Below, in pieces: positions 3,140 to 51,748 of a stretch of DNA of 64,000 nt (position 1 is its first letter; each line of letters starts with the position of its first letter). The notes beneath the pieces were generated by a model. The model saw only the letters and a program-made list of their open reading frames with translations. It was not told where the DNA came from and did no database searches. Both the position numbers and the translations under genes were made by a program. Source of the stretch: Histomonas meleagridis 2922-C6/04-290x (lineage: Eukaryota > Protista > Parabasalia); contig JAANOX010000106.1 in assembly GCA_020184695.1 (NCBI GenBank), positions 1-64,000 on the forward strand, given 5' to 3'.

Positions 3140-4865
3140 TTCTCAAACTTATGCCAAATTATTTATACTTTAATTAAATTAATTCAAATTTTGTTAAATA
3201 TTTCAAACTTCAGCAAAATTTTACGAACTTTTGTGAACTTATTCAATTTTGAAAACATGAATTTTTTTAAATTTTTCTAATGAATTTTAATCTTGAAACT
3301 TTCGAAGAAAATGAAAAACTAGTTTTAACAGGAAATTAATCTTGCTATTGATTGAATATCAAGTGATGATGAAGAAGATTAAATGAAATATGATGCAGAT
3401 TTTATTATTAGTCAAGAAGATGATCACATGATGAAAACATTGACAAATTTCAAATGTCAAGAATTCTTAATTTTTTTCCAAGTCATAGAACCTTATCTGG
3501 AAAATGCTCATACAAGTGGAAGAAAACCAAAACTTTCAATTAAAACAATGTTTTTAATAGCACTATGCTCTTGTAAGCATGCTTTGAGTTTTGTTTTCCT
3601 TCAAATGCAATTTGGTTATGACAATTCCTATTTGAAAAGAATTGTCTTTCAAACAATTTCAATTTGTCATAACATTTTATTCAATTTTGCAGTTCGATGG
3701 ATTTCACAAAAAGAAAATGAAAGAGATGGGATTTTATTTGAACATTTTCCATTTGCTACACGTGCTATTGATGCTTCTGTACAAGTATCAAAATCAAACT
3801 TAGATTGGTATTCAGGAAAACATAAGAAACATTGTATCAAAATGCAAGCAGCTGTTGGTCCAAAAGGATTGTTAATTGATTTAAGAGGATCAGTTAAAGG
3901 TTCTACACATGACTTCAAAATGTTCCAAAAAAGTGGATTACTAAATATCTATTTATCTGAAATGAATCGTTACATATCAATGTTCCCAAATAAATTTGCT
4001 CCAACAGCTATTTTTGATAAGGGATATATAGAAATTAAAAATATTTATCCTGGTGCAGAAACACCTTCAAGAAAACAAGAAACGGATTAACAACACAACA
4101 ACAAAATTACAATTAAAATATCAATCATGATAGAGTCATTGTTGAAAGATGGTTTGGTAGACACAAAAGTTTATGGAAAATCATGTTTTCAAGATTATCC
4201 TTTGAATTAGATAGATACGAAATGACGTATATCTTTTGTAGTGCTTTAACAAACTTTCATATTTTCAATTATTTTTTGACTGAAAATGATCCAGTGGTTC
4301 CAGAAATGCACTAAACCAAAAATTGAAAAATATTTTTTTTCTTATTCAGAAGAAATTATTCCATTTGTTTCTCACTTGCGCTTATTATATGAAGTGCAAG
4401 AGGTGGATATTAATAATCAATTATTAAATTGCTTATCAATATCAACAACAATTCGGTGAAAATTCCAAGTATTTTTTTATTTGTTGTCTAGTTTATTGTC
4501 TTTTTTGCTTTTCTTTCAACAAATCAGTATTTTGCTTCCATAATTCCAATTGCCCTTCATTTGAACTTATCATTTGAAGTTCAAAAGATTGATACTGATA
4601 ATCAATTCTTAAATTTCTTATAATTATCAATAGCAATTTTTTTTCCAAATATAAACTCACTATAGTATTTTTAGGCATACCTGTAAATGTCATTATAAAA
4701 TAATAAATGGTTATTCTAGAAATTTTGTTTTGAATTTTCCAATAACCGTAAAATTGTATTCAAATTTTGATAAGTTCCGTAAAATAAATTTGGCAAAAGT
4801 TTGAGAATTTTGGCCATCTCCAAATAGATTTTTCCGAAGTCAGAAATTTGGCATAAGTTTGAGAA
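3140..4865 (+). mobile_element. PIF/Harbinger or ISL2EU (IS5-like) transposon remnant, minimum extent
   Basis: A perfect 21-bp inverted pair (3140-3160 and 4845-4865, TTCTCAAACTTATGCCAAATT) flanks the DDE_Tnp_4-type transposase; true termini and TSD could not be resolved. Confidence 0.5.
3383..4314 (+). pseudogene. Harbinger/IS5-like DDE transposase (HTH_Tnp_4 + DDE_Tnp_4), frameshifted
   Basis: RAIDAS, YSGKHKKHCIKMQ, GSTHD and IFDKGY; after a frameshift near 4080 the frame continues DRVIVERWFGRHKSLWKI..ALTNFH and contains one TAA. Confidence 0.82.
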
Positions 4866-9433: not shown

Positions 9434-10560
9434 TTACTTTTTCCCTTGGTTTTGAAAGAAATCCTCCTGGAAAATAGAAGCATAAACTCGTTTCCTCCAT
9501 TTCTTTATAATTTCACGAGAATTACCATCCAGATTAGCAAATTTTTCCTCTTCTATAACCACTCGATATATTTCCAATATTTGTAGCTCCAAGTGTCCTA
9601 CAACAATCTCTGGTTTGATCTCTTCAATTGTTTCTAGCATTTTAACATGAGTCGATATGTATTTGTTTTCCGCATCTAGATCGATTTGATAAAGTTTGAA
9701 TTTTTTCTTTTTCTGAACATCTGGCCATTCTAGATTTGATTTTTGATATCTAATGATCGGATCAGTGATATTAAAATGATCAAGAACAAATTCATCACCC
9801 TCTATATTTCTATAAGGACATAAGCAAGTGTGAAGGCAATCAGCGTCTTTTGATCCATATCTCTGCTCATTAATTTTTTTTGCATCACATGTGCAATCAT
9901 CCTTTGTAAAATTTTGAATATTTTCTCTTTTTATAATTCGAAACTCTGCTTTTATTCGAAGTCTATTTATGTTTCTTATTATTCCAGCTTTTCCATTCCC
10001 ATTGAAATTTCTATGAGATTCTATCACATAATCGACTAAATTAGCTATTCTATTAAATGTACTTAATTTACTTTTCTTTTTAATAGTTTGACAGAGCCTC
10101 GTTATTAGAAATTCTGCCAATGATTATGGGTTAAATAGTTCAATGAGGTGTCTATGACAAATGAACCTTTTCAGTGAATATTTTTCGCATGTTTTTTTCA
10201 AAGCCTTCCATAAATCGCATAGTACATCCATATTCGAATTTAAATTTAAGTTTCCTAATAATCTAAGTTGATATATTTAATTTGTTCATTTGTTAATTTT
10301 GAAATTTTTATCTCCCTACTCAGTTTGTTTCAACGTCATTTTCCTGTGAAGTGACCAATGAACTTGAATACTTTACTTGATTTTAACTCGATAGAGGACA
10401 TTAAAAAAATAATTACAGCTATGGTGCGCGGAAATGTCACTCCACTTTCGAGAACGATCAAAATCAATTGAAAAAGTGGTAATGTCAAAATATATACAAT
10501 CGATGGATCCAGAGCATCAAACAATGATGGAAATTTATGTTTAATCGAGACCAACAGCAT
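9434..10560 (-). pseudogene. Mutator-like (MULE) transposase C-terminal remnant with SWIM-like finger
   Basis: Just upstream of ORF 9434..10120 the frame reads DVLCDLWKAL..RFICHRHLIELF (MULE CxxH-like); the ORF contains DCTC..CLH (SWIM CxC-CxH pattern). Confidence 0.5.
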
Positions 10561-11465
10561 CAATACGTACTAGAGATTATTTTAATACTCACAAATGCAA
10601 TTAGTCAAGCTGCAAATGGTAACATTGATTCAGGTGATCATTCTTTTGATTTTATTAAATATCCTCCACATCAATCCTGTCTTACTACCACTGTGACAAG
10701 TGAGATGGCCAATAAACTTATTGCTGGATATTTAAAGTTCAATAATTTTGATCACACATTTTTCTTGTTTTGTAAGGAAGCAAAAATCAATGATAGAGAA
10801 ATTATTGATGAGCATCTAGTTGAAACTCTTCAAAATTCATTAGTATACACGAAAAATGAAAAGGAAGTGAAAACTAAAATTTCCGAAGAAAACATCTTGT
10901 TCAATTTTGGAAATCATCTTGAACTCCTCTCTAAAGTTAATATTTTGATAATAAATATGTTGCTTGAAGAAGAGCGAATTACTATGCGAGAAATTTCTTC
11001 TCACTTTAGGTGTTCCAACACTTCATTTCAGAAAGTTTTTCAAAAGAATAATATTGAATATCCAAAACTCAAAAGAGGGAGGCATTTAAAGAATGTAGAA
11101 CAAAATGCGATCGATATCATTTTGCAATACACTTAAAAATTCAGAGTTGGTTACAAAAGGATGACAGATGTTTCTCTAAGTAAAGGATAGAGTGTTTCTC
11201 AGAACCAGATCCGAAAGGTTTATGAAAGTAATGATTTATTTATGTTTGAAAAAGAATATAAACCTGAAAATGAACATAAACTTAGATTTGTTGCGCCATT
11301 TGTTAATCAGATTTGAAACACTGATCTTCATTACTTAGATAAAAGGTAAGGGGAAGAACAAAAATATTTAATAAGTTTCATCGATGATAGATCTCGAAAA
11401 ATTTTGTATCATGATAATTTCGACTTACAACAACTTTTGTGAAATTATAATCATAGAAATCATTT
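10537..11465 (+). pseudogene. LisH-like + HTH + rve-type DDE integrase/transposase, truncated next to the mariner insertion
   Basis: EMANKLIAGYLKFNNFDHTFFLFCKEA (LisH pattern) and ITMREISSHFRCS (HTH). The same frame continues through 4-5 stops to RFVAPFVNQI*NTDLHYL..YLISFIDDRSRKILYH (first Asp of an integrase core). The true start may be the ATG at 10706. Confidence 0.68.
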
Positions 11466-11467
11466 TA

Positions 11468-12751
11468 CAGGGGGGTGAAAAAGTACCCGACCCACCCCTG
11501 TAATTCTTTATTAAGAATGAATTAAAACATAAAATGGTATTTATATATAAGTATAAACTTTTGTGTATTTAAGTATATAAAAATTTTTAAAAAATATAAA
11601 TTCAGTAAAAAGTTATATACGTTTAAATTTTCGAACGTTTAAAATAATTGGTATTATGTCTATTGAGCAAAGGTATATCATTCATTTTTAAATGCTACAA
11701 GGCCAAGGTTGCAGGAAAATCAAAAAGCAATTAGATGAAACGTATAAGGAGGAAGCATACTCTGAAATCCAAATAAAATTTTGGATCAAAAGCTGGAAGG
11801 AGGGTAGAACCACAGGCGAAGATCTCCCAAGGAGTGGAAGGCCAAAAATCGATATTAAGAAATTAATTTTAAATTTTCTCAATGATGAACCTTATGCATC
11901 AACCAAGGTAATGGCAAAAGCTTTCCACGTTGATAAATTTTTTGTTAAGAGAAACTTATTAGTAATGAATTATAAAAAATATCCAAAAGAATGGATTCCT
12001 CATTTACTCACTAATGAACAAAAATTAAAAAGGGACCAAGAATCAGAAGAACTTTTAAAGATACTTAAGGCAGATGAACCAAACAATTTTGCCAATATTA
12101 TTACTGGTGATGAAAGTTGGTTTAATATGCATTATGATCATGTATTTCAATGGGCACCAAATCCAGATTCTGTTACACCAAGGTTGAGACAAAGTATCAA
12201 TACAAAAAAACGGATGGTTACAATATTCTTTACTGGTGTTGGCCTTGTAACAGTTAAGATTTTAGATTTGAGTTTAAAATTTAATTCAACACATTTTTGT
12301 GGATGCATTTTATCCAGCATCGTCAAAAATGGACGAATTGGTACTAGAAAAAAAAAGGTTAAGGAAATGTTTATTCATATGGACAACTGTCGCATTCATA
12401 ATTCAAAAGTGACCACTGATTGTATAAAAAAAAGCGGACTAATAAGAGCACCCCATCCGCCATATTCCCCCGATATTGCACCAAGTGACTTCTGGTTTTT
12501 CGGATACTCGAAAAACAAGTTCGCAGGTAAATCATTTAACGATGAAAAAGAGTTAAAAAGTGCCATTAAAGAAATATGGGACAATCTTACTTTCGAAGAC
12601 CTTCAAAATGTGTTCCATGAATGGATTAATTGATTGGAAGATGTCATTAGAAACAATGGTGAATACATTAATTAAAAACATTAACTAAATTTATTAATAT
12701 TAAGATTTTAGCATTTTTGAAAGGTGGGTTGGATACTTTTTCAGCCCCCTG
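11468..12751 (+). mobile_element. Mariner (DD34D) transposon, 1284 bp
   Basis: ~31-bp TIRs CAGGGGG(G/C)TGAAAAAGTA(C/T)CC(G/A)ACCCACC; TA TSD at 11466-11467 and 12752-12753. Confidence 0.93.
11656..12675 (+). pseudogene. Mariner transposase with two nonsense mutations
   Basis: ATG 11656 MSIEQRYIIHF*MLQ; WIPH, ITGDESW, HMDNCRIH, YSPDIAPSDF (34 residues between the 2nd and 3rd Asp); WIN*LEDVIRNNGEY. Confidence 0.9.
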
Positions 12752-15587: not shown

Positions 15588-16535
15588 ATGCATCACGAGA
15601 AGAAAATCCCACAAAAGAAGCTTGATTTCTGCGCTAAATTCAAGGAAATGTTCCACAAGTATAACAAGCTTGCCCTTGTTTCCGCCGAGAATGTTACAGC
15701 TTCTCAACTTCTTGGAATCCGTCACGATCTTCAAGGTCTTGCCGAAATTGTTTTCGGTAAGAACTCACTCATGAGAAGAGTTGTTGAAGAACTTAAGAGC
15801 GAACTTAAGAACATCGAAGTTCTTGAACCACTTATCTACCACGGCGTTGGCTTCTGCTTCACAAACGGATCATTCTCAAAGATCAAAGATGTCATCGACA
15901 ACCACTGTAAGGGTTCACCAGCTAAAGTTGGTGCTATCTCACCATGTGATGTTGTTGTTCCACCAATGCGTACAACCCTTCCACCAACACAAGTTTCCGT
16001 TCTTCACGCCTTAAACATCCAATCCAAGATCTTCAAGGGTACCATTGAAATCACATCAGAAAAACTTCTTATCAAAGAAGGTGAAAAGGTTGGTGCCTCA
16101 GAAGCTAACTTACTCGGTCTCCTTAACATCATGCCATTCAAGTACACCCTTAAACTTGTCAAACTTTACGATAATGGAAATCTTTATGAACCAAGCATCC
16201 TTGAAATTTCCGATGAAGTCCTTTCTGGAAAGTTCGCCACAGCCCTCAAGAACGTTGCTGGTCTTTCCATTGGAATTGGCTATGTCAATGCTGCATCTGC
16301 TCCACATATGGTTGGCTCAGCATTCAAGGATATTGCATCAATTGCTGTTGCCATTGACTACCAAATGAAGCAAATCGCAGATGTCCAAGCACTTCTTGCT
16401 GATCCAGAGGCACTTGCTAAGATGCAAGCTGCAGCCGCTGCATCTGCTCCAGCTGGAGAAGAAAAGAAGGAAGAGAAGAAGGAAGAGGAAGAAGTTGTCG
16501 AATTAGCTGGTGGATTCGATGATCTTTTCGATTAA
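15588..16535 (+). CDS. RPLP0: 60S acidic ribosomal protein P0 (uL10)
   Basis: IVFGKNSLMRR, GSPAKVGAISPCDVVVP, Ala-rich hinge and acidic tail EEEEVVELAGGFDDLFD. Confidence 0.97.
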   Translation: MHHEKKIPQKKLDFCAKFKEMFHKYNKLALVSAENVTASQLLGIRHDLQGLAEIVFGKNSLMRRVVEELKSELKNIEVLEPLIYHGVGFCFTNGSFSKIKDVIDNHCKGSPAKVGAISPCDVVVPPMRTTLPPTQVSVLHALNIQSKIFKGTIEITSEKLLIKEGEKVGASEANLLGLLNIMPFKYTLKLVKLYDNGNLYEPSILEISDEVLSGKFATALKNVAGLSIGIGYVNAASAPHMVGSAFKDIASIAVAIDYQMKQIADVQALLADPEALAKMQAAAAASAPAGEEKKEEKKEEEEVVELAGGFDDLFD

Positions 16536-24645: not shown

Positions 24646-26352
24646 TTATATTTGAATGTGATTATCAAATTCATTATCTTGGAAATCATTCGCAAATGGA
24701 TCTTCTTCAATATGATTCATCTGAATGTTTATGATTTTGTGATCGATAACATTTCCTTCATTTTTATAATTTTTGTCATTTTCTTCGTTCATTTCGTTTT
24801 CTTCAAATGATGGTGAATTTTTTTTATGTTTTCGTCGATAAATATAAATAATGAGAATCAAACAAACAATGATTATAACAATAATAACAACACAAATAAT
24901 TATAAGAATATTATGTTCATTATCATTTTGAACATTTTCTTCGTTTTCTTTGATGATAAAATAATATTTTGAATAAAATGAATATGAAATTAAATATTGA
25001 ATAATTGTATATTTATAAAATATGAATTCTGAATACTTGAAATAACTATTTAAATTACTAAATGTTAAATATAATGATTGCGACAAAAATGTATTAATAA
25101 GAAGTGTTTTCGTATTTGTTACAGATTGAATTAATACAAATGAATAAGTTAAAGATTCACTGTTTAGAAATGTTTCATAAAATGTATTCGACTTGATAAA
25201 TGAATCTGACTTAGTAAATGTATTTGATTGTGTAAATGTATTTGATTTAGTAAATGTATTTGATTTAGTAAATGTATTTGATTTAGTAAATGTATTTGAT
25301 TTAGTAAATGTATTTGTTGGTCTATTCAATGTAAAATTATAATGACGTATCATTAGAGTTTTAATTTCAGCAGAATCATATCGTTTATAAAATGTTTCTC
25401 CATTTATTGTTGCTTTAATTGTTAATTCTTCATATTTTTGTTCAAGAGCATATACATTATAAACTCTTGTGCCTCTTGAAACATTATTCGTATATTCTCC
25501 ATTCGTAATTTCATAATCATTAATAATACTTGCATTGGAATCAGCACTGACTGCATGTGTCTTAACATTAAATGTGCCTTCGTGCTTTAATCCACTAATA
25601 TAAAATCGCCAATTCGTTGATGATATTTCATTCGGATCGAATCCAGAACCAAGTTGAATTGTAATTTCAAGAATTGGCGTTATAGTATACATTTGAATTT
25701 GAGGGTTTGGTTTTCCGTAATAAGTTTCTGATGTTTCTGCAATGATGTTTAATTGTTTCTTTGCCGATGATGTTTGCACTACATTAGTATTAATAATTTT
25801 ATATCCTTGTGAATTCACATCTGAAAAATATGGATAATATACAGTAAAGGTTATTGTTTCATCTCGATCTTCAAAATAAATACCAGTTCGTATTATATCA
25901 CTACTCCAAGTGCATTGCTTATTTATGTACTTAAATTCCATGTCACTCCTGGGTGCATCAACAATTGTAAACCCAAATTTGTCGCCGTTTTGGAATCTTC
26001 CATAAGAAATAAGCTCAAACCAAATTGTATCGTCTGACGCAAGAAGTTTTTCGTTCCTCACATTCATTTGTATATCAGTGTCATCGATTTTATCATTATT
26101 TTTGTTGAAAATTAAGCGAAAATTTTCATTTAAATTAGATGTTTGTAAGTTAGAAAAGAAATTTTTAATATACCTATCATACAGCTTTTTGGTTTTTTCT
26201 TCTAAAAGATTATTTTGTGTTTTATTGTGTTTGAAGAATCGAAAAAAATCTTTCGAAATTTTAAAAATTGATTGATGTAAACTTGAATTATTTACAACAC
26301 ATGAAGCATCTCTGCCAAATGCAATTATCAATATACTTAATACGATATTCAT
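24646..26352 (-). CDS. Type I membrane surface protein with SNTFTK-repeat stalk
   Basis: Signal-like N-terminus, (SNTFTK)n, TM ILIIICVVIIVIIIVCLILIIYIY and acidic tail EEDPFANDF. Confidence 0.8.
   Translation of the reverse strand: MNIVLSILIIAFGRDASCVVNNSSLHQSIFKISKDFFRFFKHNKTQNNLLEEKTKKLYDRYIKNFFSNLQTSNLNENFRLIFNKNNDKIDDTDIQMNVRNEKLLASDDTIWFELISYGRFQNGDKFGFTIVDAPRSDMEFKYINKQCTWSSDIIRTGIYFEDRDETITFTVYYPYFSDVNSQGYKIINTNVVQTSSAKKQLNIIAETSETYYGKPNPQIQMYTITPILEITIQLGSGFDPNEISSTNWRFYISGLKHEGTFNVKTHAVSADSNASIINDYEITNGEYTNNVSRGTRVYNVYALEQKYEELTIKATINGETFYKRYDSAEIKTLMIRHYNFTLNRPTNTFTKSNTFTKSNTFTKSNTFTKSNTFTQSNTFTKSDSFIKSNTFYETFLNSESLTYSFVLIQSVTNTKTLLINTFLSQSLYLTFSNLNSYFKYSEFIFYKYTIIQYLISYSFYSKYYFIIKENEENVQNDNEHNILIIICVVIIVIIIVCLILIIYIYRRKHKKNSPSFEENEMNEENDKNYKNEGNVIDHKIINIQMNHIEEDPFANDFQDNEFDNHIQI
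25211..25316. repeat. 18-bp coding tandem repeat (about 6 units, SNTFTK)
   Basis: Units of TTAGTAAATGTATTTGAT on the plus strand. Confidence 0.9.
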
Positions 26353-31698: not shown

Positions 31699-33413
31699 CA
31701 GATATGAATAAAAATGTACTAACCCCTGTTGCACTTTTCACTTTTTTGAGAAAAATGCAAAAAACAAGCGATCTACGCAAAGCTCCAGCTATCTCGATTG
31801 ATATCTTAAGAGAAAGGCTAAATCACACTAGCTTAAGCCTATCAGATCGAAGAGCTTTATTAAGAAATCCTGATTTTTTGAAGCTACAAACTAGAAACGA
31901 ACAAGTCATTTTTATGCGCGAATATTGCGAATTAGAATGTCATACTTTGCTCAATAACAAAAGATTAGGAGAAATATTTGGCACAAGTCATGGCGTAATC
32001 GCAAATATTAGAAAAAAGGCAAAAAACATAAAAAAAGAGTTGGGACGTCCCAAAAATCTTGATGATTAAGAAGAAGAACAAATATTGAAATATATATTTG
32101 ATATAGCAGATAAAAACAAATTTGTTACAAAACAAGAACTTCTGCACTACATAAGAGAGCAGTTTCATCAAGTAATAACAAAAGGATGGCTCTCGGGATT
32201 CTTTGGAAGAAATGTTTCACAAATCAGTTCCACAAAAGCAATTCCATAAGATAACACAAGAGTGAGCGTACCAAGAATTTTTTTTGAACAAACATATTGA
32301 AAATATAAAGAAATATGTTGTTGGGAAAGCTGCTGAACTTGTGTTTAACATTTATGAAATGGGGTCAAGTGAGTGGGAAGATAAGAAGATAAAAACTGTT
32401 ATCGCCCCTAGAAATTTATGCCAAAAGCCAGTAATGGTTCCAGTAAAGCGCTCAGTAAGGCATCAAACATTAATGGCATGCGTTAGCGCAGCAGGGGATG
32501 CAATTGTGCAATGGTTATTGCTACCAGCCCCCAAGCGAAACAAATTTTTAAAACAGGTGTGAGGGAAGATATAGATTTAAAAATATCGAAATCTAATTCA
32601 CTCTATGTAACAAATAAGATATTATATGGATATATAATTAAAGTATTCCTACCATATGTAAGTCGTCAAAGGAGTATTGATGGATTTTCAAATGAATTCG
32701 CAGTTATACTAATGAATGATCATTCAACACATTGTGACCCCGAGATTTTGGAAATTCTCGCTAAAAATTGATTTTTAGCTCGTGATTACATTTCCTCCTC
32801 ATATCTCCGACATTTTCCAGATGCTTGATCTTGTAATATTTGGTGGACTAAAAAATGTAAAAAATAGACTTACTTCAAAGAAAAGTTTGAATGATGTTGC
32901 TGCTTTAACCGAAAAAATATTTCGGGCTTATGAACAGGTTACGACACGCACAAATGTACGCGCTAGCTTCGCGAGAGCTGGAATTATGTCTGAACTTGAT
33001 GATAACTTAAGGAGAATCATTTTTGATCAGGAAAAAGTGATAAATTCATTCGAATTTATTGAAATATGAAACATCAATTTTGATGAATCAAATTTATATC
33101 AAGAACAAAAAAACACCAAGTAAAAATTTATTACCAAGGAATACTTCCCAGAAGGTTCTTTTGAATAAACACACAAGATATTTAAAATATCTGATGTGTG
33201 AAGAAAAAAAGTGAAAATATCAATATTTCTGAAAATTTCCATATCACTTCATCTGAGGACAATATTAAGTTATAAACATAAAAACAATAAAATCTAATAA
33301 AAATTAACAACAAACATATTAGTTTATTTTCTCATTGAATAAGTAGATATAAGGATATTTTTGTTTTTTTCGAAAAAGTGCAACAGGGGTTAGTTCATTT
33401 TCATTCATATCTG
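31699..33413 (+). mobile_element. pogo-like (DDE_1) transposon, 1715 bp, defective
   Basis: 40-bp TIRs CAGATATGAAT(A/G)AAAATG(T/A)ACTAACCCCTGTTGCACTTTT at 31699-31738 and 33374-33413; TA on the right flank, TC on the left. Confidence 0.88.
31755..33166 (+). pseudogene. pogo/DDE_1 transposase with multiple stops and frameshifts
   Basis: FNIYEMGSSEWED (decayed first Asp), ILMNDHSTH and FPPHISDIFQMLDLVIFG across four track ORFs. Confidence 0.85.
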
Positions 33414-33736
33414 TAAGTATTCTCTATTATAGAAAATTGAGTTATTAATACTTGCTAAAGTTTTACATTGCATGTCTAATAAAAAAATTGGAGATTTTGC
33501 ATAAAAGTTTTGATATTTATATGATCCTTGGTAGACCCTTCAAAATGATATTATTAAAAAACAGCAGGAGCTATCTCAAAAATCTGTATCGTTGTCGTAA
33601 AGCAGAATGAATACTTTACACTAGTGTGAAGTTATAAAATGATTGGAAGCTGTCAAAATGTTCAAAAAGTTAAAATTCCTTTTCTTTGTTATTAAAAAGA
33701 ATATTAAAAGTGACATTATCAATTGATTCATTTTAA

Positions 33737-34793
33737 ATGGAAAAAACAAGCAATTCTAATAAAGAAGATAAAAAGCCAAAAATAAAAGAATTGGAAATTA
33801 TTGAAACAATTCAACAAGTTATATTAAATTTAAACAAAGAAAACATTTCTCAATCAGAATCAATTATTGCCAAATTTGATTATGACTATCCATATTCTTT
33901 TAATCAAGTAATAAGTCAATTTATATTTTCCTACAATTTTGTTGGATTGAATGATTTTGACATATGTTTTGATTTTATGAAAGAAATCCAGACACTTCAA
34001 GAAAGTAATAAGATCAAACCAAAAATTTTTGATGTTTTTTTCTCAATTTATTCTTCACTTTAATCAAGAAGTAAATTGTCCCCATTTAAAAATGATAGAA
34101 AATAATACAGTGGATACAGAAATATTAAAAAACAGATCAAAACCCTTTTTTTATACATTATATGACCAAAGAAGAAATTGAAAAGAATAAGCACGCACTC
34201 AGTTTTGAAAAAATATTTGCCAATTATGAAGAAATATCAAAGAATGATTGGAAGCTTCATAAAAAATATATTAAAGAAGGACATAATCCGAATGAAATCG
34301 CAAAAATGATTCGAAATGATGAAGTCGAAAAACTTCAAAAAATATCATCACAAACAAAATTTGATTATATATTTTCTTAAAGAAAATCCAATTCCGTAAA
34401 ATATTTTAATATGTTCAGTCGAATCAGGAAATATTGAATCTGTTAAATATATTTTAGATCAAGAAGGAATTGATATTAATGCTAAAGATATTTATTTGTT
34501 TTATTTGATATTTATTTTAATAATTTGATATATCAATATAATATTTGGAAATTATTTAAATTATTTTATACAGCACTTACATTAGCATCTAAATATGGTC
34601 ATACAGAAATATTTAAATTACTTCTTGAACAAGAAGGAATTGATATTAATGCTAAAACTATTTATTTCTTTTATTTGATATTTATTTTAATAATTTGATA
34701 TATCAATATAATATTTGGAAATTATTTAAATTATTTAAAACAGCACTTATGAAAGCATATTTAAATGGTCATTCAGAAATAGTTAAATTATGA
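33737..34793 (+). pseudogene. DUF3447/ankyrin gene, internally deleted, with two 80-nt spacers
   Basis: Paralog of 42993..44189; frameshift near 34060 and deletion near 34380; ankyrin exons separated by spacers 34490-34569 and 34660-34739. Confidence 0.8.
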
Positions 34794-35416
34794 AATAAGA
34801 GCAATCTTTATCATTGAAATATATTTTTTTTAATTAATATCAATAAACAATAAAATTATAATACAGTTTAATGAGTGGTCACTAAAAATAACGGGGCAAA
34901 TCTTCATTTAAATTTAATTTCTTGTATATGAAGGAAATTTTCACTCAAGCCGTGAGTAACTAAAAAGAAATGAAATTTCAACAAAATGAAAAACAAGAAG
35001 GACTTTTTAACCAATCTTAAGATTGAATTGAAAAGGATTGAATACTTATCGTCTTTTTATGGCGACGGTTAGCGTTTTTGTGTTGAAATTGATCGTTTTG
35101 AATTGGTGGGGATTAAAAAAACCATGTGCAAAAATAAATGAGGGGTTGCGTTAGCAGGCCTTCAGCTTCTGCAACAAAACTCCTCGGCATTGCACGTGGG
35201 GTACTTACCATCCTGTAATCAATTCCTCTGATTCCACCCAGGAGCTCTTGTTTTATGACGACGGTTTTCACCCCTCAAAATGTTTTTTTACAACAATTCA
35301 AACCGTTTGTAAAAAAACGCTGGCCTGGTTTTGAATTAAATTTAATTCAATATTGAATTATAATTCAAAGTTTGTGTGAGTTGAAAAAATATTTAAATCG
35401 GTATCAAATTGCCAAA

Positions 35417-35917
35417 ATGTTTTTTGCTCTCCTTGCTTTACGCTCAATAAGGATACCAATTAAACTTGAGCCAACAATTTTAACGACAGTCCCAACTGAG
35501 CCAATAATCCCACCAGTTTCTATTCAAAATGATGATGAATACGATTATGACGAAAACAAATTCAAGATTAAGAAAGTCATTAAGAAGATCAAAGATGTCG
35601 TTGACAAGACAAAGAAGGTTGTTGATGTAATTGATGAAGTTACAAACGATGAAGAAGATGATGATGAATATGAAGTTGAATATGTTCTCGAAGAAGCCCC
35701 AGAACTTGGTGAAAACAAATTTAGACTTAAGAAGTTCTTCAAGAAGCTTGGAAAGGTTATCAAGGTTGTTACTAAGGTTATCAAGATTGGTTCAAAGATC
35801 ATTTCAGTTATTGCAAATGATGATGAAAATGTATATAAAAGAATGCCAAAGAGATGCCGTAAGCTCTGCACAAAGTCAAATCCACCAGTCTGCAGGACAG
35901 TGTGCTACATCTCCTAA
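35417..35917 (+). CDS. Secreted polyprotein, candidate multi-peptide antimicrobial precursor
   Basis: First ATG 35417 (MFFALLALRS signal-like), Pro/Thr-rich pro-region, and acidic spacers alternating with cationic amphipathic segments and a 4-Cys C-terminal peptide. Confidence 0.75.
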   Translation: MFFALLALRSIRIPIKLEPTILTTVPTEPIIPPVSIQNDDEYDYDENKFKIKKVIKKIKDVVDKTKKVVDVIDEVTNDEEDDDEYEVEYVLEEAPELGENKFRLKKFFKKLGKVIKVVTKVIKIGSKIISVIANDDENVYKRMPKRCRKLCTKSNPPVCRTVCYIS

Positions 35918-36249
35918 GTAAACTAATTGAAATTTATTGTCTTTTGAATGATAACCGTTTACATAGTTCAATGAAGAAAACGGTTTTACCATGATGAAGT
36001 AAATAAAAGTGGAGTTTTGACACTTTTATCACAAAGAGCGCACGTTAATATAAATGAATTCATTTCTAAAAGTACCACCCAAACAGTTCGATTTGTTTCA
36101 ACTGGAAGCCCTTGTATTGGTAAGAAAAAGCTTTTAATCATATATGCCACTGGAAGTTATACGAATGAAACATAACCATATTTCAATGATTGTACAAAAC
36201 TAATGACATGTATTCTTATTAGCAGCAACTTTTTTTATATTGTCTAAAG

Positions 36250-36520
36250 TTTGTTTCAATAATTTTAAATTTATAAATAATATTTGGAATTTATTTTATT
36301 CAGTTGAAACAGCACTTATAAATGCATCACAGTCTGGAAATAGAAATAGTTAAATTTCTTTCTGAACAAAAAAGAATTGATATTAATACTAAAAATCCAT
36401 GTTTATTTTATTTGAGATTTATTTTAATAATTTAATATTTAAAAATAATATTTGGAAATTATTTAAATTATTTAAAACAGCACTTGCATTTGAAAAAGGT
36501 TTCCAAAATATCGAAAAAGT
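36250..36520 (+). pseudogene. Isolated ankyrin-repeat fragment with an 80-nt spacer
   Basis: TALINAS..EIDINTKN, spacer 36397-36476, then TAL; no 5' part of the gene. Confidence 0.65.
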
Positions 36521-36865
36521 ACTAACTAAAAAAAAAGTAATTGCACTTATTATCTCATGCATGATCTTAGTTTTTTTGCTGTTTATTAAGATATATCGAT
36601 CAAAATAAGTTATGCCTTATACTAATTAATTTTTTTAAAAAAAATGCAGATCTCAACCAGCCAATGCCATTCATTTTTAGCATGAATTATTGTTCATTGG
36701 CAATCAATCTTGTGAATTTTTTAAACATTGTATTTAGTAAAAGTCATTTCTAATAAATGGATTCTTGAATGTGTTTAAAATCAAAATGAAGAAAGTGTGT
36801 TAAATTTGTGATTTAACCTATTTTTCATTTTGCTGTTTTGAATACGTTAGTCAGACAAATTTTAA

Positions 36866-38152
36866 ATGGAGGCAAAACTTGCCCAACAAAAAGCAGAATT
36901 CGAAGCTTTAAAAGGCAAATACGATGCATTTATACAAAAGGCCTTAATAGTCTCTTCAAAGCACCAAGAAATTATTTCAATTTTCCTTGATAAGTACCAA
37001 ATATCATTAGAATTTATTAATGGTCTTCCTAAATTCGCTCTTGATGAAGCAGCAATTAGTAAAATGCCACCAGCTCCTGGAGTTCCTGGTTTCATAACCA
37101 AAAACTGTTCTGACTTTTTTTCTGTATTTCAACCAATCAGTAATACATTTAATCAATTTGCTCAAATGGTCAAAGAAAATTTTACCACCAAAAGAGTTGC
37201 CATGTTTTTTGACTTCGATTCTTTTATTGATTCTGAAATACAAAAAGTCAATGGCATTTTCGAAAATTACAAATCATTATATGAAAAGCTTATAAAGTCC
37301 AATGAAACTATAAATGGCCTTTATAACCAACTTATTTCAGCCCAAAAATCAAGTTCCAAACCAAAACAAGGACGTTCACCTAAAAAGTCACAAGATATTG
37401 AATCCAAATTCCGACACTATGCTATTCAGCTCACACTTCAATCATCCCTTGTTCGTAGAATCAATAATGAACATTCACGACATCTCATTACTATTTCAAA
37501 AAGTATGGTCACGATCAAACAAATGGAAAACGAGAAGCGTGCGTTCTTACTCAATATCTTTTTAATGTTTTGTGACATATGTAAAGGGGTCAAAATCCAA
37601 ATACCAGATACCTTTAAAGTTCATTTCTCGGATTCTTGGAAGAACTCTTTTGTTGAATTTGTTAAAAGAGAAGGTATTGTTCGTACCGATATCTCCCAAA
37701 GCTATTTCAAGCCATATAAGTTCTCTTTCCAAGAACATAAATTGACAAAAGCGTTTAAACGGCCGCGACTCTTACCAAAAAGTGCTCCGTGTTACTTTGC
37801 TGTCGCTATTCATAACTTTAAAGGGGAGAACCAAAGCGAACTATCATTAGAAAAAGGAGAGTACATATACCTTTATGAGTATCAACATGAATCTGGGTTC
37901 TGTTGGTTTTTGGCAAAAAATAAGAAAAACCAATTAGGATTTGTACCTTCAAATGCTATCAGACCAATACATTGCCAATACGCAATAATGATAAACCCAC
38001 AGTTGAAGTGTAAAGATAATTATTTGGGAGTACCTGCAACATCAATTGTAAATGTAAAGGATATAAATGATAAGACAATCACATGCAAAGACTTGAACCA
38101 AGATAGTGGTGATGTCTTCATAGATTCAATTATTCTTGACATTACTCAATAA
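36866..38152 (+). CDS. Coiled-coil (BAR-like) + SH3 domain protein
   Basis: Helical N-terminal ~250 aa; SH3 AVAIHNFKGENQSELSLEKGE..WFLAK..GFVPSNAI. Confidence 0.75.
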   Translation: MEAKLAQQKAEFEALKGKYDAFIQKALIVSSKHQEIISIFLDKYQISLEFINGLPKFALDEAAISKMPPAPGVPGFITKNCSDFFSVFQPISNTFNQFAQMVKENFTTKRVAMFFDFDSFIDSEIQKVNGIFENYKSLYEKLIKSNETINGLYNQLISAQKSSSKPKQGRSPKKSQDIESKFRHYAIQLTLQSSLVRRINNEHSRHLITISKSMVTIKQMENEKRAFLLNIFLMFCDICKGVKIQIPDTFKVHFSDSWKNSFVEFVKREGIVRTDISQSYFKPYKFSFQEHKLTKAFKRPRLLPKSAPCYFAVAIHNFKGENQSELSLEKGEYIYLYEYQHESGFCWFLAKNKKNQLGFVPSNAIRPIHCQYAIMINPQLKCKDNYLGVPATSIVNVKDINDKTITCKDLNQDSGDVFIDSIILDITQ

Positions 38153-40873: not shown

Positions 40874-43800
40874 TTAAACGTATTGTTTATTAATGTGTAA
40901 TGTGATTATAACACAACAACTCATCAGTGAAGTTTGAAATAATGTGAATAAATTCCAAGTCTATGGGATAAATTTAAACGAAACAAAAAAATATCTTTTG
41001 CATTGATATCATTTCTATTATGTTCATCAAGTAGTTTTGCAATTTCAATGTAACCTTTTGTTAATGCTATCATAAGTGCTGTAATAAATATCTTTAATAA
41101 ATTTCAAATGGAATATTCGAATATTAAAACGAGAGAATAAAAATTAAAAAAATCTATAAAATAATTTTTGCATTAACATCAATTTCTTTATGTTTAAGAA
41201 GTAACTCAACCACGTCTATTTGACCATTATCAGACGCAATGAGAAGTGGTGTATAAAGTAAAATTAAAATATTTCAAACAGATAAATAAAATATAAAATT
41301 ATTAAAACATATATTAATTAAAAAATATTAATATCTTTTGCATTAATATCAATTCCTTTTTGTTCAAGAAGCAACTTAACAATGCTCAAGTTTCCAGTAT
41401 AAGATGCTAAAAAAAGTGATGTACATAATGAGATAAAATTATTCCAAATATTTAATTAGAATTTCGGATTTATGAATAAAATATTAATTAAAATATATTA
41501 ATATCTTTTGCATTAATATCTATTCCTTTTTGTTCAATAAGTAATTTTACTATTTCTGTATAACCATTTTCAGATGCTAATATAAGTGCTGTTTTAAATA
41601 ATTTAAATAATTTCCAAATATTATTTTGAAATATAAAATTATTAAAATAAATTTTAAATAAAAGAAATAAATAGTTTTAGCGTTAATATCAATTCCTTTT
41701 TGTTCAATAAGTAATTTTACTATTTCTGTATAACCATTTTCAGATGCTAATATAAGTGCTGTTTTAAATAATTTAAATAATTTCCAAATATTATTTTGAA
41801 ATATAAAATTATTAAAATAAATTTTAAATAAAAGAAATAAATAGTTTTAGCGTTAATATCAATTCCTTCTTGTTCAAGAAGTAATTTAACGATTTCTGTA
41901 TGACCATTTTCAGATGCTCTAATAAGTGCTGTTTTAAATAATTTAAATAATTTCCAAATATTATATTGATATATCAAATTATTAAAATAAATATCAAATA
42001 AAAGAAATAAATAGTTTTAGCATTAATATCAATTCCTTCTTGTTCAAGAAGTAATTTAAATATTTCTGTATGACCATATTTAGATGCTAATATAAGTGCT
42101 GTCCAAAATAATTTAAATAATTTCCAAATATTATTTTGAAATATAAAATTATTAAAATAAATTTTGTCTTTAGCATTAATATCAATTCCTTCTTGTTCAA
42201 GAAGCAATTTAACGATTTCAATATGACCAAGTCCAGTTGTAATCATAAATGCAGTATCAAATAATTCAAGTAAATTCCAAAATATCCTAATAAATATTAA
42301 ACAAAGAAAATAAAAATCAAACAAAACAAACATGTATTTTTTTCATTAATATTAATACCTTTTTGTTCAAGAAGTAATTTAACTACGTTAATATGATTAT
42401 TCTGACAAGAAAACATTAAAGCTGTAAACAATGAATGAAATAAATTCCAAATATACATTAAAAATATTCAAATATCTAATTAACAATTAAGTTAAATAAT
42501 GATATATCTTTTTCATTTAAATTAAATAAAATTTTCTTTTTTTCCAAAAATATTTTAACAATTTCAATAATACCACTATAAGATGCTAAAATAAATGCAG
42601 TTTGATACAATTATAAAAAAACTCCAAATATGAATTTTAATCAAAAAATTTTTATTATAATCAAGTAAATTAAATAAATTTTAAATAAAATAAATAAATA
42701 TCTTTAGCATTAATATCAATTTCTTTTTGTTCAATAAGTAATTTAACTATTTCTATATAACCATTCCAAGATGCTCTCATAAGTGCTGTAAAATACAAAT
42801 TAAATAAGGTCCAAATGATTATAATTAATTTCGTATTTTTAAAACAAATATCAAATTTTTTTTAGGTACATCTTTTGCATTTATATCAATTTCTTTTTTA
42901 GCAAGTAGAAATTTAACGATATCAACATAACCTTTTGAAGATGCAAGAATAAGTGGTGTTTCATAAAATTAAAATAAATTTCAAAAAAAGTTTTATTGAA
43001 ACATTAAAATATAAATATTTCTTCCATTAATATTGATCCCTTCTTGTTTCAGAATAAAATGAATTAATTCATAATTTCCAGAATTTATTGAATAAACCAA
43101 AATATTTTGCGGAATTTGTTTTTTCTTAAAAAAATATTTTACAAAGAATATATTTCCAACTCTTGCAAATTCATTTATAATATCATTGCTTATTTCCATC
43201 ATTTTCGATATCAAATATGAAAATAGCTCATAATTATCAAATCTAATACATCGGACTCCTAGATTAATCAATTTTTGAAAATCAATTTTTTCTTTATTGA
43301 AAAAATAATGAAAAATATCATTTTTATGGAATTTAATAATCGTATTGTAAACTCCTTCAAATGATGAATGATTTTGCTCACATAAATGAATTATTTCTGT
43401 ATTTCCTCCTACAATTGCATATTTTAATGTATTTTTTATATTTGATCCATTCATGAATAAAAACTTAAAACATTTAATAGCAGAAAAAAATGCTGCATAA
43501 TCAATTAATGTAACATTTTCTTCATTAATATATGAACATCTTTCATAAAGTGATGGTTCAATTTTTTGATTAAAATCGAAATCATTTTGTGATGAAATTT
43601 CTTGAAGTTTTTCTATTTCATCATTTCGAATTATTTTAGCAATTTCAGTTGGATTATGTCCTTCTTTAATTAATTGTTTATGGAGTTCCCAATCATTCTT
43701 TGATAGTTCTTCAATATTAAATTTAAATTCTTGATAAAATAATGGTTTCATTAGATAGGGTTTATCGAATTTTTTGATGAATTCTTTAGTTTGAAAGTGC

Positions 43801-49351: not shown

Positions 49352-51748
49352 TTAAAAATAAAGATTTGATTTTGTAGAAGAGGAATCTGAATTAGAATTT
49401 TCGTTTGTACTTTTTTCAAGGAGTAAACTTACTATTTCTGTGTAACCTAATTGTTGTGCAATTTGAAGTGCTGTTTCAAATTAGTAAAACATATTTCAAA
49501 TTATTAAAACATATTCCAAATTATTAAAACATATTCCAAATTATTAAAGCATATTCCAAATTATTAAAACATATTAAAAACTATTAAAATATATTCCAAA
49601 TTATTAAAACATATTACAAATTATTAAAACATATTCTAAATTATTAAAACATATTCTAAATTATTAAAACATATATAAAATTAATAAAACATATTCCAAA
49701 TTATTAAAACATATTATAAATTATTCAAATGAATATATTTTGCATTAACATCAATTCCTTTATCTAAAAGTAATTTTACTATTTCTATATTATTATTTCT
49801 AACTGCTATATGAAGTGCTGTTTCAAATTAGTAAAACATATTTCAAATTATTAAAACATATTCTAAATTATTAAAACATATTACAAATTATTAAAACATA
49901 TTCTAAATTATTAAAACATATATAAAATTATTAAAACATATTCCAAATTATTAAAACATATTATAAATTATTCAAATGAATATATTTTGCATTAACATCA
50001 ATTCCTTCTTTATCTAAAAGTAATTTTACTATTTCTATATTATTATTTCTAACTGCTATATGAAGTGCTGTTTCAAATTAGTAAAACATATTTCAAATTA
50101 TTAAAACATATTCTAAATTATTAAAACATATTACAAATTATTAAAACATATTCCAAATTATTAAAACATATTCTAAATTATTAAAACATATATAAAATTA
50201 ATAAAACATATTTTAAATTATTAAAACATATTTTAAATTATTCAAATGAATATATTTTGCATTAACATCAATTCCTTCTTTATCTAAAAGTAATTTTACT
50301 ATTTCTATATTATTATTTCTAACTGCTATATGAAGTGCTGTTTCAAATTATTAAAACATATTCTAAATTTTTAAAATATATTTCAAATTATTAAAATATA
50401 TTACAAATTATTAAAACATATTCCAAATTATTAAAGCATATTAAAAACTATTAAAACATATTCCAAATTATTAAAACATATTTCAAATTATTCAAATGGA
50501 TAATTTTTGCATTAACATCAATTCCTTTTTGTTCAAAAACATATTTCACAAGTTCAATATTTACTGATTCTGAAGCAAATGGCAAAATATCTTTTGGAAT
50601 GTGATTGTTTTGAAGGAAGCATTTAACGAGATATAAATTTCCATTTCTTGCTGATTCGTTTATATTATTAGCATTAACATTAATTCCTTTTTCTTCCAAA
50701 AATGCTAAAATTTCATAATTATCCTTTTTAATACAAAAACTTACTAAATCATAAGTTTTATCTTCAGACATTTTTGGTATTGATTGTGTTTTTTCTAAAT
50801 TATTTTCATAAAGATATTTAAAGATATCATTTTGATGAAATTCAATTGCTGTTTCATATGCACCTTCAAATGATGAATGATTTTGCTCACATAAATGAAT
50901 GATTTCTTCATTTCCACCTGCAACTGCATATATACCTGTGTTATTTACATTTGCATTATTCATAAGTAAATATTTAAAACAATTAATTGATCCAAAGAAT
51001 GCTGCATAATCAATTAATGTAACATTTTCTTGATTAATAAATGAACATCTTTCATATAGTGATGGCTCAATTGTTTGATTAAAATCAAAGTTTGTTTGTG
51101 ATGATATTTCTTGAAGTTTTTCGATTTCATCATTTCGAATTATTTTCGCAATTTCTCTTGGATTAACTCCTTCTTTAATATATTTCTTATGAAGTTCCCA
51201 ATCATTCTTTGAAAGTTCTTCATAATGATCCAAAAAGTATTTTTCTATTGTATCATTTCCATTAAACCCAAATGAAAAATGGTTTTGGTTTTCTTCTTTT
51301 GGTTTATAATGTGCAAAATATTTTGAATTAATGTTTTTAGTGATATTTTTATCAATTAAATTTTGTTCAATCATTTGTTCGATTAAATAATATGATTCTT
51401 GTGTGTTAATTTTAGATATACGTTTGATAAAAATTGGTATTAATTTAACTATGTTTTGATTAATTTCTTCTTCTTTCATTATGGAAGTGTCTTTAAAAAA
51501 TTTAAGAAAATATCAAATACACGCTTTTTTGATGAAAATGCATTATAAGCGATGCTACTTACAATAGTATTATATGTGTAGGAATAATTTGAATCGAATA
51601 ATTCCAATATTTTTTTAACTGACACCTGGAATTTTTCTTCAGTTAAACCGAATATAGTTTTCTCAAGCTCAATTAGGAATTTCATGCAGGTTGACAGATC
51701 ACCCAACTGTTGGTCTCCTATGTTTATGGCAGTATCATCATTAGTCAT
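49352..51748 (-). CDS. DUF3447 + ankyrin gene with minisatellite-expanded spacers (plus one frameshift near 51480)
   Basis: The ORF stops inside the first spacer; three identical or near-identical exons TALHIAVRNNNIEIVKLLLDKEGIDVNAKY; terminal exon TALQIAQQLGYTEIVSLLLEK..NLYF* ends at 49352. Confidence 0.55.
49475..50501. repeat. 20-bp minisatellite (ATTCCAAATTATTAAAACAT) forming four spacers of 260, 160, 180 and 160 nt
   Basis: Spacers at 49475-49734, 49822-49981, 50072-50251 and 50342-50501. Confidence 0.9.

Follow-up and report, generated by a model that had tools for sequence, protein, structure and literature searches.

Both the pairing of an anionic pro-piece with a cationic helix and the Bowman-Birk loop have precedents in animals and plants. 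Here we describe a gene of Histomonas meleagridis 2922-C6/04-290x, located at positions 35417-35917 on the forward strand of a 64,000-nucleotide stretch of contig JAANOX010000106.1 (below, the window), which looks like a member of an undescribed family of defence or feeding peptides that has so far been found only in Histomonas and metagenomic relatives. Its predicted product carries a leader, acidic spacers, two cationic amphipathic helices and a four-Cys tail, with single asparagines on the borders of these modules (Table 1). What is new here is the lineage, a sequence family unrelated to the described ones, a border code made of Asn only, and the joining of helices and a putative inhibitor hairpin on one chain. 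H. meleagridis is a parabasalid (Tritrichomonadida, Dientamoebidae in the taxonomy), and a previous interpretation of the bare DNA (the sequence-only reading) had pointed to a protist, namely a trichomonad, as the source.

Like the Histomonas precursor, amphibian skin precursors such as those of bombinin and dermaseptin combine a conserved leader and an acidic pro-piece with a cationic amphipathic peptide, and bombinin precursors likewise carry more than one peptide per chain. Frogs also produce peptides of the Bowman-Birk type (ranacyclins, OSTI and SL-BBI); in the ranacyclin and OSTI peptides a disulfide loop contains T-K-S-I-P-P. Such peptides inhibit trypsin, some are antimicrobial as well, and their precursors contain an acidic pro-piece (PMC7565067, PMC5408667). 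Yet, the frog peptides have Lys-Arg convertase sites whilst the Histomonas borders are single Asn residues, and no sequence homology can be detected between them. The frog loop has 11 residues (CWTKSIPPKPC), whereas the Histomonas loop is of the nine-residue plant type with a second, outer disulfide, and in contrast to the frog precursors the helices and the putative inhibitor hairpin of Histomonas are found on one chain. The sequence-only reading had likened the layout to cecropin, cathelicidin and amphibian precursors. The acidic spacers, the cationic amphipathic helices, the Cys peptide and the high expression that it described agree with our data, but the borders do not, since those precursors use dibasic or elastase-type sites and the borders of Histomonas carry a single Asn, a pattern of the legumain type.

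In sunflower, an asparaginyl endopeptidase frees SFTI-1 from the preproalbumin PawS1 (PMC5834244). SFTI-1 has the loop C-T-K-S-I-P-P-x-C in common with P0001, the closest paralogue of the window gene, and release by a legumain-family protease that cuts after Asn or Asp in an acidic compartment, which is established in sunflower, is predicted in Histomonas. The plant peptide lies inside a seed albumin and consists of 14 residues with a cyclised backbone and one disulfide, whereas the Histomonas hairpin is C-terminal and linear, contains four Cys in 28 residues, and has cationic helices on the same precursor. For these two loops convergence is far more likely than common descent. Among the Bowman-Birk inhibitors of legumes and cereals (PF00228), the reactive loop of the pea and soybean proteins, C-T-K-S-N-P-P-x-C, is identical to that of Histomonas, but it is part of a double-headed 14-Cys domain which the Histomonas tail does not have.

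Several cationic peptides, anionic linkers and a repeated short cleavage motif are also found in the spider-venom latarcin and cupiennin precursors and in the Impatiens Ib-AMP polyprotein. These belong to animals and plants, their processing sites are Arg-based or unknown, and they have no sequence relation to the Histomonas family. Among bacterivorous mucosal protists, the amoebapores, the naegleriapores and the saposin-like proteins of Trichomonas and Histomonas have the same presumed antibacterial role, and naegleriapores come from multi-peptide precursors. The known protist effectors are folded saposin-like or enzyme domains or bacteriocins derived from bacteria, whereas the helical modules of Histomonas are linear, cationic and free of Cys, all cysteines lying in the C-terminal hairpin. 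The antibacterial toolkit of Trichomonas includes laterally acquired lactococcin-972-like peptides and NlpC/P60, GH19 and GH25 enzymes (PMC12612818, PMC8529796). In Histomonas only saposin-like pore formers are discussed as such effectors (PMC6391000, PMC8529796), and our literature searches found no mention of the peptide sequences or of any linear cationic peptide family of parabasalids.

The peptide family, its asparagine borders and its helices

The gene is an intact ATG-to-TAA open reading frame (ORF) of 166 codons, and the exact 166-aa protein is present in NCBI, carried on two contigs of which the longest is 1.73 Mb. On the translation, the coordinates and the net charges of the two helices (+5 and +11) are exactly those of the sequence-only reading. 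Relatives were searched for with word-indexed and exhaustive HMMER runs over 1.84 billion cluster representatives and with cluster look-ups. The family found in this way contains nine H. meleagridis genes (the window gene, GPJ56_005646, which is P0001, and GPJ56_006279, GPJ56_010382, GPJ56_000240, GPJ56_008424, GO595_000646, GPJ56_008089 and GPJ56_002557) and six relatives from short metagenomic or SRA contigs. The search for paralogues that had been proposed with the sequence-only reading thus gave eight further genes of the same species, though tblastn detected none elsewhere inside the window. No member was found by HMMER in any other named organism among the representatives, and neither a profile search with all 15 members nor a tail-only search added any. 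The Histomonas copies are dispersed on different contigs amid housekeeping genes (WD40, actin, DENN, an RNA polymerase subunit, ribosomal L7Ae), and all family members are annotated as hypothetical protein only.

The family layout consists of a leader, a Pro-rich stretch, an acidic block, a junction motif, a helix, an Asn with an acidic block and, usually, a Cys-containing (four-Cys) tail. The junction motif reads Y-x-[LI]-E-E-x-P-x-x-G-x-N and is followed by K-F-x-[LFI]-K-K-x-[FWI]-K-K and by an amphipathic Lys/Val/Ile helix. The motif of spacer 1 is the most conserved of the family, with Y89, G98 and N100 invariant (15/15), and in helix 2 the residues K105, K106, K109 and K110 are invariant as well; in the alignment helix 2 appears as the core conserved peptide of the family. 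There is one helix in P0014 and P0015 and two in most members, whilst P0003 and P0009 have three junctions and in these the Cys peptide itself is preceded by the same G-E-N/K-F junction. Such a variable copy number (1-3) of a bounded module is typical of polyprotein precursors.

Six of the seven Asn of the protein lie on module borders (N38, N47, N77, N100, N134 and N138), and the seventh is inside the Cys loop at the P2' position, where it precedes a Pro. Across the family the border Asn is kept in 11/12 members at N47, 11/12 at N77, 15/15 at N100 and 11/15 at N134, and column 133, which adjoins N134, has Asn in five members. The Asn content of the leader, spacer 1, both helix interiors and the tail is 0.4-2.9%, compared with 7.6% in 11 other ORFs of the window. 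N-glycosylation was considered as the cause of this pattern and was rejected, as no border Asn is within an N-x-S/T sequon. Because Asn is found at nearly every border and is depleted within the modules, the simplest reading suggested by the sequences is that an asparaginyl endopeptidase (legumain, family C13) cuts after these Asn residues. Legumains are present in both the exoproteome and the genome of H. meleagridis (PMC6391000, PMC8529796), and the genome encodes C13 peptidases together with many C13 inhibitors (PMC8529796).

The amphipathic character that had been proposed for both helices was seen when the peptides were modelled as alpha-helices, where they exceed shuffled controls (z ~3): compared with shuffles of the same residues, the hydrophobic moment (muH) is 0.49 for helix 1 (z 2.8) and 0.51 for helix 2 (z 3.1), with p ~0.003. 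The same holds for 24 of the 26 peptides parsed from the 15 members (muH 0.41-0.62, z 2.2-4.0), and the two that fail are first-module peptides, of P0015 (muH 0.31, z 0.9) and P0013 (muH 0.07, z -1.2). Across the family helix 2 has a net charge of +9 to +14 and a low mean hydrophobicity (Eisenberg <H> ~0.0-0.1). In the whole precursor there are 32 basic and 29 acidic residues (net ~+3), and the net charge is between -2 and +5 in 12/15 members; as the precursors are near neutral overall, the spacers balance the cationic peptides.

The AlphaFold2 model, made with the 15-sequence family alignment, has helices at residues 48-76 and 114-137 and strands at 145-151 and 159-165. The strands are its best-predicted part, with a predicted local distance difference test score (pLDDT) of 69-77, which is of moderate confidence on a shallow alignment. 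When the whole protein was compared with Pfam no family reached the cut-off; the best matches to families of antimicrobial peptides (AMPs) were clavanin (E 0.31) and pilosulin (E 0.48), no frog-peptide family was among the matches at E <=1, and no SapB match indicated a saposin B-type domain, the helical modules being also without Cys. A globular fold was rejected, as an exhaustive VIA-align search over 48,161 PDB chains gave single-helix matches only; with no PDB fold above Z 2.8 and no Pfam family at cut-off, the protein is not a globular domain. The nearest named protein-language-model neighbours, which serve as leads only (scores 0.62-0.76), are bombinin, dermaseptin, cecropin and brevinin clusters for the whole protein and dermaseptin, cecropin and melittin clusters for helix 2.

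The hydrophobic leader is kept in 12/15 members, including paralogues at 40-55% overall identity, and in a hydrophobicity ranking of the N-termini of 79 ORFs it comes near the top, beside a surface-protein leader. P0012, as annotated, is without it. Directly after the leader, residues 10-14 form the pattern [ST]-I-[RKE]-[ILVT]-[PT] in 11/15 members (for example S-I-R-I-P). It has a likeness to the Ile-centred NPIR-type vacuolar sorting determinant of plant pro-peptides, and by this analogy the pattern might be a lysosomal sorting signal.

Some single members of the family differ in other ways. P0011 and P0019, whose accession numbers differ by four, come from near-identical genes on the same contig of 557 kb, and only one of the two copies lies within the 16.5 kb examined (locus L008); P0011 has an additional Asn within helix 2. 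In P0002 the first module is degenerate. Another protein, P0016, is encoded on an ENA contig of 1.27 Mb, has 412 aa and matches the family profile weakly (E 1e-5). It contains several near-identical tandem modules, each with a cationic G-W-K-K-T-F-S-K-... part and an acidic E-E-E-E-D-E-N-Y spacer, and looks like an independent multi-copy cationic-peptide precursor.

The Cys tail, selection and transcription

When the tail was compared with all PDB sequences a single match was found, the pea Bowman-Birk inhibitor 1pbi (E 0.92). C151-C159 aligns to the first reactive-site loop of this protein (C-T-K-S-N-P-P-T-C) and, more weakly, to the second. In Pfam, the only family at E <=10 was Bowman-Birk_leg (PF00228, E 0.061), over profile positions 8-17, which are the loop. 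By its score below the gathering cut-off, and with four Cys instead of 14, the tail is not to be classed as a member of the Bowman-Birk domain family. However, each of the seven residues that the nine-residue motif prescribes (Cys, Thr, Lys, Ser, Pro, Pro and Cys) is present, and CTKSNPPVC is the canonical Bowman-Birk/SFTI-1 trypsin-reactive loop. The Cys peptide that had been listed beside the two helices in the sequence-only reading does exist as a four-Cys tail, but because of this loop it is more probably a serine-protease inhibitor hairpin than merely a further lytic peptide.

Among 257,806 six-frame residues of the window and the fetched loci, the strict motif C-T-[KR]-S-x-P-P-x-C occurs only in the window gene and in P0001, and by composition its chance is ~2e-10 per position and ~1e-3 per proteome. 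The loop of P0001, C-T-K-S-I-P-P-V-C, is the sunflower SFTI-1 loop with one change, and the Asn/Ile difference between the paralogues at P2' is the natural alternative of Bowman-Birk and SFTI loops. Other tails have the loops C-P-K-S-I-S-P-I-G-C (P0015, a loose pattern match to the Bowman-Birk motif), C-A-S-I-D-P-K-A-C (P0003) and C-V-R-D-S-I-S-R-I-C (P0011), which may be variants of the Bowman-Birk loop. With a spacing of x3, x7 and x3, the Cys residues could pair in register on the predicted hairpin as a disulfide ladder of 151-159 and 147-163. A protein-language-model search of the tail gave weak matches only (<=0.48), with no Bowman-Birk cluster among them.

The DNA in common with P0001 contains the gene with ~300 nt upstream and ~70 nt downstream, whilst the flanking genes differ. 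The nucleotide identity is 0.82 in the upstream flank, 0.97 in codons 1-137 and 0.74 in the downstream flank. In the tail it is 0.53 in the arm before the loop and 0.29 in the arm after it, and the loop is identical at 26/27 positions; since the arms diverge beyond the non-coding flanks, this indicates constraint on the loop itself. Between the paralogues the hairpin arms retain only the Cys residues and the basic character. For residues 1-137 the synonymous divergence (dS) is 0.128 and the nonsynonymous divergence (dN) is 0.006, a ratio of ~0.05, whereas for residues 138-166 dS is 0.63 and dN 0.54 (28 codons only). Purifying selection on the leader, spacers and helices is strong, or else these parts were recently homogenised, and outside its loop the tail is hypervariable. 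Frog peptide and conotoxin genes likewise combine a conserved pre-pro region with a mature end that evolves fast.

Contigs from four RNA-type public runs cover the gene. A 551-nt cDNA-like contig of a 2013 run (X5) spans 35392-35936, that is the ORF with ~25 nt upstream and 19 nt downstream, and this is the size expected for a trichomonad mRNA with very short untranslated regions (UTRs). In run X2 the contig depth rises from 41, in a contig that ends at 35433, to 2791, in one that begins at 35404. The latter start coincides with the T of a TCA element that lies 11-13 nt before the ATG. TCA is found at the same distance from the ATG in 7/8 family loci compared, and is absent there in the P0002 locus (L004). 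The TCAAA at 35404 fits the parabasalid initiator (Inr), with the consensus of Trichomonas promoters, and the TAAA after the stop codon was compared with the Trichomonas poly(A) signal consensus.

The count of Lys codons in the helices given in the sequence-only reading is exact (16 AAG and 4 AAA), and in the whole gene the AAG:AAA ratio is 19:6, an AAG fraction of 0.76. This fraction is 0.75 in RPLP0 (15588-16535) and 0.00-0.41 in the other 20 long ORFs of the window. A Lys-codon bias like that of RPLP0 and unlike that of every other long ORF in the window suggests that the gene is highly expressed. Compared with the neighbouring SH3-domain gene, the gene has a 5-150 times greater RNA contig depth; as contig depth is a poor measure of expression, it was used only as agreeing with the codon bias. 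That the ORF is spurious is ruled out by expression, codon bias, dN/dS and family conservation.

Proposed function and alternative explanations

The gene, its transcription, the pattern of selection, the family, the module grammar, the loop motif and the charge balance are directly supported. Concerning the mechanism as a whole, we lean, on balance, towards a precursor from which a legumain would release antibacterial helices and a serine-protease-inhibitor hairpin; targeting, cleavage and both activities are predicted from the features described above. The short hydrophobic leader, which is followed by the Pro/Thr-rich stretch, would take the precursor into the endoplasmic reticulum (ER) and the secretory or lysosomal route, and transport would occur as a charge-neutral pro-form in which the acidic spacers neutralise the cationic modules. 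Legumain would then cut after N38, N47, N77, N100, N134 and N138, probably once the precursor has reached an acidic compartment, for instance the food vacuole, or when it is released. The two freed amphipathic cationic helices, above all helix 2, would permeabilise anionic bacterial membranes, whilst the freed 28-residue hairpin, stapled by two disulfides, would mimic the Bowman-Birk site and block trypsin-like serine proteases. Such proteases would otherwise destroy Lys-rich peptides, and in the gut the hairpin could protect both the helices and the parasite itself from them. Histomonas ingests bacteria and requires them for growth (PMC8529796), and antibacterial helices would fit a parasite that eats and depends on bacteria. 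A bolder version, in which Histomonas and its close relatives evolved the family de novo as ribosomal polyproteins written in an "Asn code" for legumain, each with linear, cecropin-like antibacterial helices and a convergent Bowman-Birk/SFTI-type hairpin that protects the Lys-rich peptides in the gut, is offered tentatively, and we would not yet bet on it.

Several observations speak against the proposed mechanism. The leader has only ~8 hydrophobic residues and no classical small-x-small cleavage site. Helix 1 contains several acidic residues and is degenerate in some paralogues. The AlphaFold2 model is of low confidence overall (mean pLDDT 47.5) and so is the ESM Atlas model, as is expected for a non-globular precursor. 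The Bowman-Birk match is marginal in HMMER, both in the PDB search and in Pfam, where it scores 14.1 bits against a cut-off of 20.4, and the full loop is present in only 2/15 family members while the other tails carry different loops. At best weak evidence in the same direction is that the paralogue accessions, locus-tag numbers and predicted tryptic peptides were not found in the surfaceome and exoproteome supplements, weak because these tables list transcriptome contig ids and because K-rich peptides are poor tryptic targets.

The marginal HMMER statistics and the presence of the full motif in so few members leave room for another explanation of the tail, in which the likeness to Bowman-Birk loops is a coincidence and the tail is a cationic beta-hairpin AMP of the tachyplesin or gomesin type, or a structural cap. 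Such beta-hairpin AMPs combine a Cys ladder with cationic charge, and the C-x3-C...C-x3-C ladder and the net charge of +8 would fit them; the basic loops of the other tails and the absence of a Bowman-Birk cluster in the protein-language-model search of the tail can be read in the same way. Yet, a coincidence would have to produce all seven specified positions, at a chance of ~1e-3 per proteome, and then a P2' Asn/Ile difference that follows the natural Bowman-Birk and SFTI-1 variants. It would also have to explain a loop that is almost unchanged at the nucleotide level between arms of 53% and 29% identity and non-coding flanks of 74-82%. We regard the coincidence as a serious possibility, but not as the probable one. 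Another question is the target of the helices, since with the same precursor and processing they may mainly lyse host cells and act as a virulence factor in caecal and liver necrosis. H. meleagridis is tissue-invasive, with lytic factors such as saposin-like pore formers in its exoproteome (PMC6391000), and melittin is one of the neighbours of helix 2, as a lead only. The very high charge and low hydrophobicity of helix 2 do not favour this role, as this combination is typical of bacteria-selective and not of haemolytic peptides. Furthermore, the identical protein is present on two contigs taken as the virulent and the attenuated assemblies (the pairing is direct only for P0002), so the sequence does not seem to track virulence. 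A main function in host lysis is thus unlikely in our view.

One can also ask whether the protein is cut at all. The leader is unusually short, and in 6/15 members (6/11 distinct tail types) the last Cys is four residues from the end, which gives CaaX-like ends (CYIS, CLSI, CYTK, CYAK, CYAK and CDAN). The product might then be an uncut, highly charged and largely unstructured protein, for example a membrane-associated cytosolic one that uses its helices and a polybasic, Cys-rich, CaaX-like C-Y-I-S end. The remaining members do not have the CaaX-like spacing, however, and in the predicted hairpin the last Cys stands in register with C147, as its partner. An uncut protein would give no role to the invariant Asn borders and to the depletion of Asn in the interiors, a module number of 1-3 is typical of polyprotein precursors, and the conserved hydrophobic leader argues for entry into the ER, all of which makes this explanation improbable. 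The N-terminus might, alternatively, be a presequence that directs import into the hydrogenosome. Trichomonad hydrogenosomal presequences are short, start with M-L or M-F and have an Arg two residues before the cleavage site; two paralogues begin with M-L, and Arg9 followed by Ser/Thr-Ile superficially resembles short presequences of this Arg-2 type. But Arg9 is not invariant (P0010 has Lys there, and P0011 and P0019 have Ser), known presequences are far less hydrophobic than the leader, and a disulfide hairpin and cationic lytic-type helices would make no sense in that organelle, so we give hydrogenosomal import hardly any credence.

Other features of the window and importance of the family

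The positions of the gene, its modules and the signals next to it are collected in Table 1. Upstream of the gene, the block at 35122-35330 has a higher G+C content than the DNA around it and is ~82% conserved with the upstream region of the paralogue. Rfam and tRNA scans of 34000-37000 and 33000-38000 gave zero matches, and therefore the block is not a known RNA gene; it may be a regulatory region common to both loci, or what is left of an element by which the gene was dispersed.

Table 1. Features of the precursor gene and its surroundings, with positions in the window
Feature	Position	Strand	Evidence
Complete coding sequence, 166 codons + TAA	35417..35917	+	translation; NCBI protein; cDNA-like contig
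Leader MFFALLALRSI (residues 1-11), then Pro/Thr-rich pro-region up to Asn38; residues 1-38	35417..35530	+	paralogue conservation
Acidic spacer 0, residues 39-47, last residue Asn47	35531..35557	+	translation, family alignment
Predicted cationic amphipathic helix 1, residues 48-77, net +5, last residue Asn77	35558..35647	+	muH, AlphaFold2
Acidic spacer 1, residues 78-100, motif Y-x-L-E-E-x-P-x-x-G-x-N	35648..35716	+	family alignment
Predicted cationic amphipathic helix 2, residues 101-134, net +11, zero acidic residues, last residue Asn134	35717..35818	+	muH, alignment, AlphaFold2
Mini-spacer D-D-E-N, residues 135-138, between Asn134 and Asn138	35819..35830	+	translation, family alignment
Predicted C-terminal four-Cys hairpin, residues 139-166 (28 aa), net +8, C147-x3-C151-x7-C159-x3-C163	35831..35914	+	sequence, AlphaFold2
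Inner loop C151-T-K-S-N-P-P-V-C159, P1 = Lys153	35867..35893	+	PDB/Pfam match, motif scan
Short 3' UTR, TAAA directly after the stop codon	35918..35936	+	cDNA-like contig end at 35936
TCAAA initiator-like element, probable transcription start, 11-13 nt before ATG	35404..35408	+	family loci, RNA contig
Duplicated unit in common with paralogue GPJ56_005646 (L001 5739-6572)	35122..35987	+	blastn, MAFFT

The gene is flanked by short ankyrin-like repeat modules at 34364-34751 and 36304-36497. In RNA-run contigs these modules reach a depth of ~5.7e5, with dozens of alternative joints between repeat copies, and the same repeat family is found at 40968-43713 and 49415-51227 of the window and at 9830-11368 of the P0001 locus (L001). 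They look like a massively repeated and transcribed module family. At 33685, in an A/T-rich region just upstream of an ORF starting at 33737, a 17-nt stretch is absent in the RNA contig of run X2 (depth 27/27) and present in the covering RNA contigs of runs X1 and X3. This difference could be a polymorphism or the removal of a 17-nt element.

On the reverse strand, 24646-26352 (-) encodes a 568-aa ORF with a bacterial fimbrillin-like domain (Mfa_like_1, PF13149, E 3.8e-15), a leader that is short and hydrophobic (MNIVLSILIIAFG) and, at the C-terminus, a transmembrane-like segment; it is probably a laterally acquired surface protein. Two ORFs, at 3383-4090 (+) and 11692-12633 (+), are of the DDE-transposase kind; their domain matches are DDE_Tnp_4 (E 2.9e-10) and DDE_3 (E 1.4e-4, below cut-off), and by these matches they are classed as transposon remnants or active copies.

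H. meleagridis causes blackhead disease of turkeys and chickens and needs bacteria to grow or colonise, and we know of no licensed treatment for this disease. If the proposed mechanism is true, the family would offer a concrete molecular way into the question of how bacterial partners are killed, digested or selected by the parasite, and the linked inhibitor hairpin could explain how it survives gut proteases. Under the bolder version it would, to our knowledge, be the first family of linear cationic helical AMPs in a protist and the third independent invention of the Bowman-Birk loop, after plants and frogs. The extension of both the anionic pro-piece with cationic helix design and the Bowman-Birk loop to a protist would be a striking convergence. 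The Asn-bordered grammar is a simple and testable rule for mining parabasalid genomes for processed polyproteins, and the parasite-specific sequences of the family could serve as markers.

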